Assembly: GCA_946965045.2 (NCBI GenBank)
Contig: OX337230.1
Location: 3,410,001-3,474,000, forward strand
DNA: 64,000 nucleotides
Source of the DNA: Epithemia pelagica
Lineage: Eukaryota > Protista > Bacillariophyta
Direction of reading: 5' to 3'
The notes below the pieces were generated by a model. The model saw nothing but the letters and a program-made list of their open reading frames with translations, was not told the origin of the DNA and ran no database searches. Shown in pieces: positions 20,689 to 30,810 of the stretch (the first letter of the stretch is position 1; each line of letters begins with the position of its first letter). Made by a program: the position numbers and the translations under genes.

Positions 20689-21936
20689 TGATTGACTAAA
20701 AGATGTTGTATGCTGACTATTTTATGGATTTGGATGGCTGTCGATGCCGTGCTTCCGGTTGTCCTCTCTCTGTGTAACGAGACGAGAAAAACGAAGACTG
20801 ACTGGTTGTGTTTTTCGTGCAAATATGGAGACGACAAAGATGGAACGAATGCGGCATTTGTGGAATTGGCCGTGGTTACGCTCGAACGTGACATGCTCCA
20901 GGATGATCTTCGCTGTGTCTTGCGGAAGAGCTCGGCGCGGCGAACGACAAACTGGTCGATTTTTATGGCGAATCGAACGTTCGACTTGCGCGAATGGGGG
21001 GCCTCTCAATTCCGTAGAGCATAAATGAACACATGCGAAGGGCTTATCAGTAGTATAGGTTTAAAAGTAGTGTTTGGGGGAGACGGAGATGCGGGGGGCT
21101 TGCAAGATTCACTACCTCGCGTGAAACCTGGAAATATGTATCCTGTCTACCAATTCCATAACTCGTGATCGCTTCGTAGTTCGGACACCCCCGACTTACC
21201 AGCATTGTATGCTGCATGCCTCTTCCGAGTTGCATTCAAATTTAGAAGTCGGAGTAGCACAGCAGGATTGCTTCAACATACCACGTGAAGACACATGACA
21301 GACAGCGAAATCTTCGTCATGGGTGCTATGTGCACTGTGCACTACCACAGCTATGATGCCTGTAGCTCCTCAAGTTCAAAGGGTATACTCCTAGGTAGTA
21401 GGAGTAGGAATAGTAGATAAATCCATGTCAAGAGTGATGGAGAGGAAAGACAACCATCATTCAAGGTAGACAGGTGAGAGGACAGTGACACCTGGGTCGA
21501 AAAGATGCGCCACGAAAGATCCTGGAGCTTTTGCTGTTACTCGTAGAGCGTTCCGCAATCGCTTTTCTTGGTTTTAGACGACATGGGGTTAGATTCGCCC
21601 TTGTTCCTGTTGGACTTTTCATGAGGCAAAGGGGTTGGATGTTAACGAGGGACCGCGATCCTTTGTGCGAAAGTGCGTCAGTGCCGCACGATACCCACAT
21701 TGTTCGAGAGGTTTGCAGTTTGCACCTTGCGCACTTTTCGGGTTCTCATTCGGTTGCTACCCTGGTAGGAGCAAATCGCTTTCATGGAAGCGAATTCGAA
21801 CTATCGCGGAACAAAAATCCCAAACTACTTGGGTAGTCTCGCAGAAGCATCAAAGGCTCATAAACCAAAGAATCACAAATTGGAAACATTCCAAGAAACA
21901 AAATCAACAAACACTACTTTGACAACCACATCCACC

Positions 21937-22253
21937 ATGTTGAACTCGTCCCGTGCCGCTGCTGCCCAATCCCTCAGCCGTAATACTAGTAAACGAGCCT
22001 CTTCCTCCTCGGCATCCACCCCAACGCCCGCCTCCTCCTCGAGTAGTACCATGAGTCCATTCAAGAACGTTTTTGCTCCTAAATCAAGTCGTCACACGGA
22101 AAAGACATGGGAGAACTATGGTTTTAACAAGAAAGAGGTACGAACGCAGAGCTTCCCATACCAGTACTGGCCATCACCGACAACGCTCACAAACACTTTT
22201 CTCCTTTTGGTTTCGTACAGTGTGGCTGGGGAGCTTGGTATCTTGTCCCGTAA
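21937..22253 (+). CDS. Spliced microprotein A (77 aa); exons 21937-22137 and 22221-22253
   Basis: CCACC-ATG start; GT-AG intron 22138-22220 (83 nt, polypyrimidine tract). Spliced product ends SRHTEKTWENYGFNKKE|CGWGAWYLVP*. The paralog at 22887 has the same intron position. Confidence 0.85.
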
Positions 22254-22886
22254 TGCTTAGAGCTATCGGCATCAACGCAGAAAAATGGGAAAACACTTTG
22301 CCCAGGACATATCAAAACCCACCCCATGTTTATATCCACACACCACAAGCAGACTTGCAGAACCAAACCACTTGGTCGTTTTTGTCGACCTTTTGCGTGA
22401 GGCCGACGAAAACGAGCAACATCTTCCATTTCCAATACCAATTTCCAATGGACGTCGACGCTTAGCCAGCTATATGCTACAAAATCTAAAGACAAGATAT
22501 ATTGACATGTTGTCATTTGTCATGACTTTCTAGCGAAATGAGTTAGTTGTTTCTCTTGGAGAACGTCTAGCAGAAAACCTGAATTGCTGAAGATGATGTA
22601 GGGATATGGATCGTCCGTCAGATGGCAAATAGGCCTGGATTCGACAAAAGTTGCTCCGAGAAAACTAGGGCCAAGGCCAAGGGCTTTGATCTCGCTCTCA
22701 AAAGATCGAAGGAAATAGGAAATGCCGCGAGAGTACGTACGTTCGGAAAACATAGGGAGGGTAGCTCAAACGCGAACTTCGTCCATGCCACATCATGCTA
22801 CGGCTCATTCAGTCCCGAGCGTGACTGAGGTCTGCAATAATTGAAGACATCATGACATCATTGCTTGAGACCCCAGCGCATAGCGC

Positions 22887-23203
22887 ATGCTCTCTGTTTT
22901 CTTGTTCTTGTTCTCGCTCCTCGCTCCCACAACTCTTCCCGTTCCAACTTCCGAGTTCTTTGCTGCCCCCAACACGACCGCCAAGTCGAACCTTTCTCCT
23001 GCCACAACCACAAGCCTTCCTCTGCCACTCGCCACGAGGCATACGGAAATGACATGGGAAGCCTATGGTTTTGGAAAGAAGGAGGTACGTTTAAGAACAG
23101 CGTATTCTCGAAGCAAACAGAAGCAACTTGGGAATGGCTGATTCTCATTCGATTCCATTTTTTCGTTCAGTGCGGATGGGGTGCCTGGTACCTTGTTCCT
23201 TAA
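22887..23203 (+). CDS. Spliced microprotein B (76 aa); exons 22887-23084 and 23171-23203
   Basis: GT-AG intron 23085-23170 (86 nt). Spliced product MLSVFLFLFSLLAPTT...TRHTEMTWEAYGFGKKE|CGWGAWYLVP*. Start codon less certain than in copy A. Confidence 0.8.
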
Positions 23204-23466
23204 GTCTCGTACAGCAATGCCACACCTGAGAGATGTAGTTCTTGTTTTTACCGTCAAACCACCACTTCTACCTTGGACGTGGTGTTTCTCCAACAAGAAA
23301 TGGATGCATCCATTGCCTGCCTGCATACTATTCCCCTGTTGCGTACACACTGTGATAGACCCCCATGAAATCATTGCATATTTCCAAGAACTGCTTCCAT
23401 TTGCTTTTCATTCCCTGCGTACATTCTACCAATCTTCACTTTCTCTCTCTGCAAACTGATACACAC

Positions 23467-23610
23467 ATTCTATACAAACGAGAAAGCGCAGCGTGGTGAC
23501 CCTGCTATACCCAACGAAACCTTTGGTTCTCAATACAATTCTATACAAACGAGAAAGAGCAGCGTTGTGTCCCTGCTACCCCGCGAAACCTTCGGTTCTC
23601 TCTCTATACA
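23467..23610. repeat. ~71-bp imperfect tandem duplication
   Basis: attctatacaaacgagaaag(c/a)gcagcgt(g/t)gtg(a/t)ccctgcta at 23467 and 23538. Confidence 0.75.
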
Positions 23611-24077
23611 TTGACCTATACATACACATTCTGCTTCTGTATGACACCATTTCTCTATAGTTCTCTTTGCACATACAATGTAGTAGTTTGCCTTTCTATA
23701 AATGGTATATTCGTACAAATAATGGTGACTGGTCATGGTTCGCTCGAGGGCGCACACGACACATCCGTGTGTCGGTTCGAGCCAAAAAGGAACGACCCAT
23801 TCCTGTGACGACTGGTGGGTCTCGTACTGCAAGCACTCCACCCCCTGGTGAGCTGCACTCCGAGCTGCACCTCCGATGCGCCATGGTCGGGTGATTCGAC
23901 GCCAGCACGTCACTAGTTTTTCTTCCAACACTTCTACTCCAAGACGCGACCGAGAGAAGTTTCCGTGGAAATCGTAAGGCCACGCCTGGTGCGAGTCCAG
24001 AGGGAGAGAAGCTTCCTCGGAAATCGTGAGTGCCCTGAAGTGCACCAAACCAGTGGATGCCGTTTCGTGGGGGTTCC

Positions 24078-25716
24078 TCAAATGCTAAACAAGATCAAGG
24101 AGAGCGCCACCAAAAACATGCCAGCCACACAGGTCCACGTGACCAAGGTGCCTTGGGGATGAAATCGAAAGGCCATGGGCAGCAATTCATCCAAACAAAT
24201 GTAGACCATCATGCCGGCCACACCACCAAACAAGATTCCATAGGCTTGTCCGGAAAAGGAGGATTGCAAAATAAGCCATCCAGTCAAGGCTCCCAAGGGT
24301 TCGGACCATCCGGAAAAACAGCCCCACCAAAAGGCGGTCCATCGACTGCCCGTCGCGTAATAAATGGGCATGGCGACACACAAGCCTTCCGGAATATTGT
24401 GAATGGCAATGCCAATCGCCAAGGCGACCCCAACGGCCGGATCTTCCACGTAGGCAACAAAGGTGACGAGACCTTCTGGAAAATTGTGCAAGGCAATGGC
24501 TGCCGCTGTCACGAGACCCATGTGAAACAATTGCGCTTGTTCTTGTTTGGCAGGCGCCGCATGGGGCGGCAACAACAACTTGTCGTCATCATCATTTCCA
24601 TTGTGCGAGGGATCGTGACTGCCACTGCCCACCGTCACAACACAGGTGGGTTCGGTACGTGTGGTGGTAGCCGCGGAACTAAAGCCCGTTTCAACCAATT
24701 CCAGCAAATCACTCACGGGAGGAAGACTGCCCGTCGGATCCTTGGTTCGATCTACCAACAGTAGAGTGGACTGTTCTTGTTGGTTGTGATGGTGGTGGCT
24801 GCTATTGCTGCTGTTACCCACAAGATGAGTCGAATGACTACTTCGCAAACAATCATGTTCACTACTTTCTTGAGACGACGATAAGGACGACGGTTGATGT
24901 TGCGTTTGCCACAAAAAAGTCGCAGGATGATGAGGTGGAGCAATCACAGAGGACGATGACACCGAGGAGCCTGTGGCCATTGTGGTTGTTTCGTCCGAGG
25001 TCAAGGTCTCATTCGCTGTTGCACTGGACAATGGTGGTGATTCTACCAGCTTTTTCGAACTAAAAGGATTGCCTTCCTCTTCTTCTTCTTCCTTGTCCTC
25101 ACTCGAGTCTGCATTTGGACTGTTTCGCAACAAGGCCAATTCTTGATTGCGTGCCACCATTTCTTCCATGCCCAATTCAAGCTGAAATTCAGTTTCACTC
25201 GTGCACTTGTGAATCAAGACATCAATGGCCTATATGAAATTGGAAAAACACAGGACAAGGACAAGAGGAAGCAGCATTGGTATGGTAAGGACAAGAACAC
25301 AGAACCATCATCATCATTGTCAAGCCGAACCGTGTCAAAGATCGGAACCTCCACCAAGATTCTTTGGCAAATCTTGAACAACAAACAACTCGTACCTTCA
25401 TGAGCAAGATACCGGCAAAGAAGGAAAAGGTGGTATAACAAAAGGCTTGATCGGCCGTGTATCCCTGATCTTGAAAGCCCGTCATGGATTTGGTATAAAT
25501 ATCCACCAAACTCACATAGAGCATGACACCACTGGCAAAGCCCAAGGATGCGGCCAAGACATCGGCCGTAGCCCATTGCGCCAAGGACGGATAAAAGACG
25601 GAACAACTTCCCAGTGCTGTGGCACCCGCTGCCGCCAAGACCAAGACAAAGGCACGACCGGTTCGTGCCGTCACCAACACGCCCGTCGTGGCTGGATCAT
25701 TCCCAAACAAGGTCAT
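24078..25716 (-). CDS. ZIP/ZupT-family metal (zinc/iron) transporter, copy 1; exons 25716-25396 and 25229-24078 (~490 aa)
   Basis: LGFASGVMLYVSLVDI, ALHNFPEGL, AIHNIPEG, SGWSEPLGA, AGMMVYICLDELLP. The GT-AG intron 25395-25230 joins the two ORF-track ORFs in frame. Confidence 0.9.
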
Positions 25717-28991: not shown

Positions 28992-30810
28992 TTAAAAGGC
29001 ACTTTTGAAGAGCATGAGCGAAATGGCCACGAGGGACATGCCGGCGAGGCAGGTCCATGTGACAATGGTCCCTCGAGCATCAAATTTAAAGGCCATGGGC
29101 AACAATTCATCCAAACAAATAAAGACCATCATGCCCGCCACCATACCGTACAAGATACCATAGGTATCGCCCGAAAAGACGCTGTTGCGTAAAATGAGCC
29201 AGGCAAAGAGTGCTCCCAGAGGTTCCGAACTAAAGCAACACAAGGTGCCCCAGACAAAGCCCTTCCATCGATCGCCGGTTCCGTAATAAATGGCCATGGC
29301 AACACACAACCCTTCGGGAATATTGTGAATGGCAATCCCAATGGCCAAGGCCACACCGACTGCCGGGTTTTCAATATACGTGACAAAGGTCACGAGGCCC
29401 TCCGGGAAATTGTGCATGGCAATTGCCATGGCGGTTGCCGCACCCATGGATACCAAGTCTTTACTACGACCAGGACCACCACTCGCACCTTGTGGATGTG
29501 GCGGTGCTGCCTCCAGAGGCATGGGTGCACCCGAATGATGACGATGATGATGTGAGGAATGGTGCCCACTGGTTTGTGGGAGTGGTGGTTGTTGTGGGGG
29601 TGGTGACACGGTTTGTCGCGTCGTACTGGGTAAGGAAGATGCCGTTTCCGGTGTGGGAGGACGTCCACCAGCACCTCCACCACCAATGGTGGTGATTGTT
29701 TCGGTCACACTGCTTGTCGTATTCAACGTGGTATTGGGATTGTGGAAATAGCGACTGTTGTCGTCATGGGCTTGTGGGTAACAATCTACCATGGATTCCA
29801 ATGGATTCGTTCTTGTGGTCGTCGTCGTAACAAAGCCATTTTCCACCAACTCGAGGACTTGAGAGACGGGAGGCAAGGCCGATGTCGATGACAACATGGG
29901 AATCGGAGAAGCCTTGCCAGTCGATACCACCAGTGGTAACATTGTGCCATGATGATGATGATGATGATGGTGCTGTTTCATGGGTGGTTCTTGTCCGCCC
30001 CCTGAAAAGGACGAGGCAGACGATGACGAGGACAAATCCTTGTGGTGCAACATGGGATCAGCCGAAGTACCATGATGAGGCCAATGAGATTGACATTCCA
30101 AAAACACCTCTTCGCCATCGTCTTCTTCTTGTTGTTGATGTTGTGGCTCGCTCCCATTCCACGGTTGAGGTTTGGACGAGCCTTGGTATTGATTGCGAGC
30201 TACCAGTTGTTCCATCATTCCAGATTCGTCTTCGTATTCATCTCGATTCGTGCATCGTTTAATGGACCAATTGATAAACTGTGCACAAGAGAAAACCATA
30301 ACATGAGAAACTATAACAATTGGACGAATCCAATTCGACATGGAAACGTATCGAATAGAAACAAGCCTATTACAATAGACGTATACGACACGTACGTACC
30401 TTCATGAATCCAATTCCGGCAAAAAAGGCCAAAGTGGTATAGCAAAAGGCATTGTCTTCGGAATGACCTTGTTCGACAAAGCCGGCAATGGCCTTGTTGT
30501 AAATATCCACCAAACTGACATAGAGCATGACGCCACAGGCAAAGCCGAGGGAGGCCCCCAGGATGCGGGCCGTGGCCCAATCGGCCAAGGCTGGATAAAA
30601 GACGGCACAACTGCCAATAGCCGTGGCCGAAGCGGCCATGACCACCAAAGCAAAGGCCGACAAGGCGCGATTGTCCGAGACTGCGGCAGACGATGTGGAT
30701 GTCGCCATGGCCGCGGCATCTTCTGGGGATGCCGATAAGGGAGAGGCCCAAAAGGTTTCGTGTTCGGTCGAATGGTCCATGGTTCCTGGATACATCAATT
30801 TCCAAACCAA
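28992..30810 (-). CDS. ZIP/ZupT-family metal transporter, copy 2; exons 30810-30400 and 30278-28992
   Basis: Same motifs (AMHNFPEGL, AIHNIPEG, SEPLGA, DELLP). Intron 30399-30279 at the same codon position as copy 1 (after MK). His8 and other His-rich tracts in the loop. Confidence 0.9.

Follow-up and report, generated by a model that had tools for sequence, protein, structure and literature searches.

Genes A and B, a tandem pair of spliced microprotein genes in the window (the whole 64,000-nt stretch of Epithemia pelagica DNA that was analysed), are members of a real, undescribed family that falls in a known class, that of small proteins with an organellar or regulatory role, and the two are best explained as old paralogues. 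For the role of this family we tentatively favour, at slightly less than an even chance, that of an imported mitochondrial microprotein that loses its presequence by cleavage and docks through its aromatic tail onto a conserved partner, copies without a basic leader acting elsewhere. Of the options put forward by an earlier sequence-only reading of the same DNA, the best fit is a small interaction module with different targeting.

Exon 1 of gene A (positions 21937-22137, forward strand) holds 67 codons and comprises a presequence-like start (21937-22011; the first 25 codons according to a crude rule, the function being putative), a Ser/Thr/Pro-rich spacer and the first part of a conserved tail, E-x-x-W-x-x-Y-G-F-x-K/R-K-E/D (22090-22137). 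An intron of 83 nt (22138-22220) separates it from the coding part of exon 2 (22221-22253), whose 10 codons end in Pro-stop and are predicted to supply a beta-hairpin with its turn and its second strand. The 3′ untranslated region (22254-22555) is delimited by the reach of an RNA-like contig (X4 record 12) that starts at 21938, giving transcript A an extent of approximately 21938-22555. An ATG at 21784 was considered as the start of gene A and rejected, as the region was without RNA coverage and the start Met of the orthologue from Epithemia clementina (P0003) is equivalent to the Met at 21937. Gene B, on the same strand, has an exon 1 of 66 codons in its assembled version (22887-23084), of which the start codon and hydrophobic leader are doubtful, the 5′ part is polymorphic (22900-22967; X4 record 13, with a loose end of an X5 contig at 22961) and the last part (23037-23084) belongs to the conserved tail according to the tail alignment. 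It continues over an intron of 86 nt (23085-23170) into the coding part of exon 2 (23171-23203) and a 3′ region (23204-23900), in which an RNA-like contig runs toward a convergent ZIP gene and thus gives only a provisional 3′ end. An imperfect direct repeat with a period of ~70 nt was seen by eye within this 3′ region, at 23467-23600.

Both introns had been called from the letters as GT-AG introns, and both were confirmed as such, lying in phase 0 at the same codon. Junction reads had been proposed as the check, and contigs from run X4 indeed skipped exactly 83 and 86 nt, with GT..AG ends; in the DNA-like runs X3 and X5, which covered the whole stretch, the introns were not skipped. Run X4, which comes from the same organism, was taken as RNA on the grounds that it covered the two transcribed units only, its library type being unrecorded; it possibly stems from the assembly's own project, and it shows splicing rather than an independent population. 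The 10 residues encoded by exon 2 are identical in A and B, and their codons differ at precisely the seven synonymous sites listed earlier and at no replacement site. At the DNA level, the two genes have just a single block of 50 nt in common, at the end of exon 1 (82% identity). The sizes claimed for the two products, 77 and 76 residues, match both exon structures, but for gene B the length and N-terminus hold for the assembled haplotype only.

In the other haplotype of gene A, the single listed SNP in the tail is silent, and three of the four listed leader SNPs replace a residue. Moreover, a 2.9-kb contig from run X5 aligned to 22054-22990 (40 substitutions, 38 gap letters) but carried unrelated sequence upstream; this junction at 22054 is a structural variant that breaks or replaces the gene A leader in one haplotype.

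Throughout the E. pelagica genome (60.5 Mb in 23 contigs, ~48% GC), the exon-2 pattern yielded 10 matches, compared to none in the reversed control, and the exon-1 motif was located upstream of each, indicating that these matches are not due to chance. A profile of the exon-1 tails recovered the identical set of 10 copies. Three contigs carry them, in four close pairs plus two isolated copies, and their products have 70-106 residues; the intron is present at the same place in nine of them, and one is intronless. The intronless copy (G000:C9:2456846-2457115; L014) has a syntenic counterpart in E. clementina (L023:11446-11550, - strand) that retains an intron of 104 nt, a difference suggesting that one of the lineages lost the intron precisely. 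In another assembly of E. pelagica (L020:5771-10270), a Copia-type retroelement (RVT_2) is found ~500 nt downstream of the intronless copy; it is a haplotype-specific insertion, the present assembly having a convergent paralogue within ~750 nt at that location.

E. clementina carries at least six copies, at the loci of four proteins annotated by NCBI merely as hypothetical (ACA910_016456, ACA910_004313, ACA910_008030 and ACA910_014863), and at least one of these copies is without annotation. ACA910_016456 is the syntenic orthologue of gene A and adjoins a convergent ZIP gene, and the other loci consist of a tandem pair, a convergent pair of which the second member is unannotated, and one single gene. 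The NCBI model of ACA910_014863 (KAL7574188.1; L022:10001-12076) fuses two tandem family genes and thereby displays a false double motif. From the orthologue pairs it follows that part of the expansion is older than the split of the two Epithemia species.

The named neighbours of the copies are genes for ZIP, CAP, Serinc, DEAH helicase, CNNM and globin proteins. In the window, two ZIP genes (PF02535) with His-rich stretches (24078-25217 and 28992-30341, - strand) lie within 6 kb, the first being convergent with gene B. The linkage of ZIP to gene A is kept in E. clementina, and another family copy is found near a CNNM transporter gene; no transporter was identified near the other copies, and no functional link is claimed. 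Upstream of the genes, the 8-mer ATCAACAA was present within 500 nt in 7 of the 16 family members, the shuffle maximum being 5. This marginal 8-mer was the sole common non-coding motif and may reflect general 5′ composition.

For the database searches the exons were queried separately, with the intronless paralogue or database proteins serving as whole-motif queries. Pfam returned nothing, at E-values up to 1-10, for exon 1 of A and B, the intronless paralogue, three E. clementina proteins or the exons of the type-2 genes described further below, and PDB searches by sequence and by profile gave chance matches only. A word search of 5.8 billion proteins, which detects proteins of similar length only, returned only the query itself with a single sequence and five Epithemia proteins with a profile. 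Using phmmer with the intronless copy against 1.84 billion representatives, we recovered, besides the query, four proteins of E. clementina and an unrelated protein with repeats. The ESM Atlas, searched by features, gave no usable match, the prokaryotic genomes and viral contigs searched held no relative, and literature searches for pieces of the motif found no paper. The family, which the sequence-only reading could not recognise, is one that has no name in these resources.

Selection on the family is concentrated at its C-terminus. Over 15 Epithemia genes, pN/pS was 0.085 for exon 2, while within exon 1 it was 0.25 for the final 16 codons and 0.91 for the 16 codons just upstream, ratios that are rough since synonymous sites are near saturation, and this gradient bears out the strong purifying selection that had been proposed for the last ~26 codons. 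The near-invariant tail reads E-x-x-W-x-x-Y-G-F/L in exon 1 and W-G-A/P-W-Y/F-L/F-V-P-stop in exon 2, with one unannotated E. clementina copy having Y-S-F. Its earlier description as a Trp/Cys motif has to be given up for the Cys, as this position is occupied by C, Y, S or E; since several members have Tyr, Ser or Glu there, the role of the motif does not lie in disulphide or thioether chemistry. AlphaFold modelling, resting on four sequences (pTM 0.24-0.35), gave a pLDDT below 50 over the first 50 residues and of ~90 or above over the C-terminal hairpin; the leader is predicted to be disordered, and after it come a predicted short helix and beta-hairpin with six aromatic residues. Fold searches with the 34-residue model gave nothing significant.

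The same tail might in turn be read as a ribosome-stalling nascent chain, in which ~26 residues would fit the exit tunnel, end in Pro-stop and regulate their own mRNA or the ribosomes. TnaC and cytomegalovirus gp48 uORF2 are arrest peptides that end in Pro-stop, and here the Pro-stop is invariant in all 17 genes with the tail of A and B (type-1 genes), conservation being confined to a C-terminal stretch of tunnel length. We nevertheless consider such stalling improbable. In the tail of the Phaeodactylum tricornutum member, the two aromatic blocks lie three residues closer together, so that the register is lost, and a conserved presequence-like leader would be unnecessary. Moreover, no copy is followed by a conserved ORF on the same strand, and transcript A ends near 22555; without such an ORF after any copy, the genes are not uORFs.

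A processed signalling peptide or RiPP precursor, as envisaged by the sequence-only reading, would have the last 10 residues after K-K-E/D as its core, and the multi-copy nature of the family, its near-invariant C-terminal decapeptide ending in Pro and the basic residues just upstream all agree with this. What makes it a very unlikely reading is that a signal peptide, expected across the members of a secreted-peptide family, is absent from 15 of the 16 members and doubtful in gene B, that the Cys is unconserved, and that the dibasic site is missing from the P. tricornutum gene and two E. clementina copies. In comparison with MSDIN, dikaritin and burpitide precursors, the core is invariant instead of variable, the leaders differ between paralogues, and no genuine double-motif protein was found. 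The nameable neighbours include no gene for a modifying enzyme, a peptidase or other biosynthetic function, although eukaryotic pathways need not cluster.

The N-terminal part of gene A was predicted to be of a mitochondrial type. Its first 25 residues have a net charge of +4 and no acidic residue, are amphipathic, and contain a possible R-2 cleavage site near residues 21-23. The transit-peptide-like leader that had been suspected on A is supported in that it passes a simple presequence rule (~25 residues rich in Arg/Ser/Thr/Ala, at most one acidic residue, high hydrophobic moment) and is conserved in the E. clementina orthologue (P0003; 50% identity over exon 1, z 9.0 over the first 30 residues). 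The leaders are not freely variable, as had been supposed, for orthologues from different species agree over their first 30 residues, with z values of 6-12.5. The rule was passed by 8 of the 16 type-1 members compared to 3 of 87 background N-termini, a difference whose significance is overstated since the rule was written after seeing the sequences and the members are related. Gene A is among those that pass, together with its orthologue from E. clementina and with the P. tricornutum gene; gene B as assembled fails, and half of the Epithemia copies fail. The E. pelagica complex I 24-kDa subunit has the same N-terminal style and passes the rule, which misses two of three mitochondrial controls (citrate synthase and SDHAF4) and is therefore to be taken as a lead rather than a test.

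In the import model that we favour, the ancestral form would be a nuclear-encoded diatom microprotein that is imported into mitochondria. The first ~25 residues, in which Arg, Ser, Thr and Ala abound and acidic residues are absent, would act as a presequence and be cleaved after import, while the Ser/Thr/Pro-rich spacer would serve as a flexible tether. Docking on one conserved partner, possibly an enzyme complex or an inner-membrane surface, would be the task of the aromatic tail with the free Pro at its C-terminus, and the protein might there be a small regulator, an assembly factor or a stress protectant. Copies without the basic leader (around half in Epithemia, perhaps including B) would bring the same tail to another compartment.

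Those copies might also hint towards a protein that is not imported at all, but stays in the cytosol or nucleus with the leader as a disordered, possibly phosphorylated tether and the tail as a protein-binding module, such as a competitor of the docking motif in some larger protein. The N-termini are neutral or acidic in half of the copies, whose tail is nonetheless under full selection, and the leaders consist for 41-67% of Ser, Thr, Ala and Pro. We consider this reading rather unlikely, as seven members lack acidic residues over their first 46-62 residues, and conservation in the leader falls on the basic, amphipathic start, as would be expected of a presequence. A length-unrestricted search found no longer protein with the tail, which speaks against this alternative.

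Gene B had been credited with a signal peptide, which we find doubtful. As assembled, it is the only member with a strongly hydrophobic N-terminus (0.87, the next member reaching 0.63), and this start is encoded by a tract of 78% pyrimidine and matches no other family leader. In the transcribed allele (X4), frameshifting indels are found, with 7 nt missing at 22922 and 2 nt added after 22945, and ~499 extra nt are present between two copies of the 7-mer at 22961-22967; DNA-like run X5 shows the same break in the leader, with its loose end at 22961. The 30 letters upstream of the break encode an in-frame Ser/Thr/Ala-rich stretch similar to the leaders of other members. On the simplest reading, most of the B leader was lost from the assembled haplotype, and the supposed signal peptide is in-frame 5′ untranslated sequence. 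The net length change of the long allele amounts to +501, which is a multiple of three, and this allele may thus still start at the same ATG.

The family extends beyond Epithemia. In metagenome contigs, the strict exon-2 pattern had no matches, and a loose version had 26, of which 25 were chance matches and one was the P. tricornutum gene. This member, which keeps the two-exon layout with a slightly shorter tail, is located on chromosome 10, ~350 nt after a Serinc gene that belongs to the cluster of the P. tricornutum protein XP_002180794.1; on the reference chromosome 10 no called gene covers it. Synteny with Serinc and helicase backs the orthology of the P. tricornutum gene. In Epithemia, two family copies have Serinc upstream of them on their own strand, at a distance of 7.6 kb, and the helicase that flanks the convergent pair in both Epithemia species is matched by a DEAH helicase near the P. 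tricornutum Serinc. An Epithemia-only family, which had been entertained, was rejected by this gene at the syntenic position after Serinc. The Serinc neighbourhoods of Nitzschia inconspicua, Seminavis robusta and two further diatoms, the only part of these genomes inspected, held no copy, which is not the same as absence from the genome, short two-exon genes being usually uncalled.

P. tricornutum has no nitrogen-fixing diazoplast, and the family is therefore older than this symbiosis. There is accordingly only a small chance that the family is a diazoplast host effector, expanded in Epithemia with some copies retargeted to the symbiont or its membrane. Its main attraction is the copy number, with 10 and at least six copies in the two Epithemia species versus one seen in P. 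tricornutum (not a genome-wide count), a comparison that leaves out the symbiont-free relatives Entomoneis and Amphora, and part of the expansion predates the Epithemia split. Also in its favour, proteins below 10 kDa are easily missed in proteomes. The presence of the family in P. tricornutum and the lack of a bacterial relative weigh against it. Among the diazoplast-enriched host proteins of a published study, four import candidates are of 23-51 kDa and one is an E3 ligase, while the family encodes proteins of 8-11 kDa (PMC12377750). Five of the six diazoplast import candidates are accordingly not family members, a comparison that leaves out Ec_g25610, as NCBI locus tags do not correspond to the Ec_g numbering. 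A combined reading, which we hold to be equally improbable, is that of an ancient mitochondrial microprotein amplified about tenfold in the diazoplast-bearing lineage, in which leader exchange would have brought copies to the symbiont or its interface, the tail acting as a host regulator of the new organelle that proteomics missed for its size.

The layout of the favoured mitochondrial microprotein has counterparts among known systems. SDHAF4/Sdh8 is a mitochondrial protein of ~100 residues in which a presequence and a flexible linker precede a conserved, aromatic tail at the C-terminus, by which it docks on an enzyme; it is single-copy and has bacterial relatives. The diatom family resembles SDHAF4 (PF07896, DUF1674) in this layout, but there is no sequence match, and the C-terminal DUF1674 motif is absent. 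E. pelagica has its own SDHAF4, at G000:C6:2402826. The plant LEA_3 proteins, including LEA5/SAG21 (PF03242), are mitochondrial and carry a W-motif of Trp1, Pro3, Asp4, Pro5, Thr7, Gly8, an aromatic residue at 10 and Pro12 (PMC7410210). Like the diatom proteins they are small and multi-copy, with an N-terminal mitochondrial-type signal (in our case a candidate one, in the 8 of 16 members that pass the crude rule), a variable, Ser/Ala-rich disordered middle (disordered by prediction in our case) and a short conserved Trp-containing motif, and their biochemical function is open (PMC7410210). In contrast, the W-motif is absent from the diatom tail alignments, Pfam gave no match, and the diatom tail lies at the very C-terminus with six aromatics and a predicted hairpin. 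The resemblance to LEA_3 is an analogy only.

Selection on this family is as strong as on a core gene, yet no name, domain model or paper was found for it, and diatom genome annotation pays little regard to short two-exon genes. The P. tricornutum copy makes location and partner testable at once, as tagging and knockout are routine in this species. If mitochondrial, the protein would be a diatom-specific regulator of an organelle that is central to carbon and nitrogen handling. The many Epithemia copies might also offer a handle on how the small-protein repertoire of the host changed around the diazoplast, a link that is speculative.

Next to the P. tricornutum member, 543 nt further on chromosome 10, we observed a second microgene of the two-exon kind (L061:10835-11029, + strand), referred to as type 2, whose exon 2 is only putative, the CAG acceptor nearby having a stop after it. 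Orthologues after Serinc were found as a 74-aa gene in Fistulifera solaris (L059:13818-14207) and in another diatom (L066:13829-14178), and their presequence-like leader is conserved; the genes of P. tricornutum and of the latter diatom pass the presequence rule. No type-2 gene was found in the E. pelagica genome, and profile comparison of the type-1 and type-2 exon-1 parts gave no significant match. The type-2 tail, W-D-Y/F-x-x-L/I-D followed by E-Y/F-G-D-P-C, differs from that of type 1. However, the two types share locus, strand, a two-exon phase-0 layout and a presequence-like leader, and several positions of the type-2 tail (W...L/I-D, then E...P) line up with those of the type-1 gene in P. 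tricornutum, and on these sequence features we suspect that type 1 and type 2 are of common origin.
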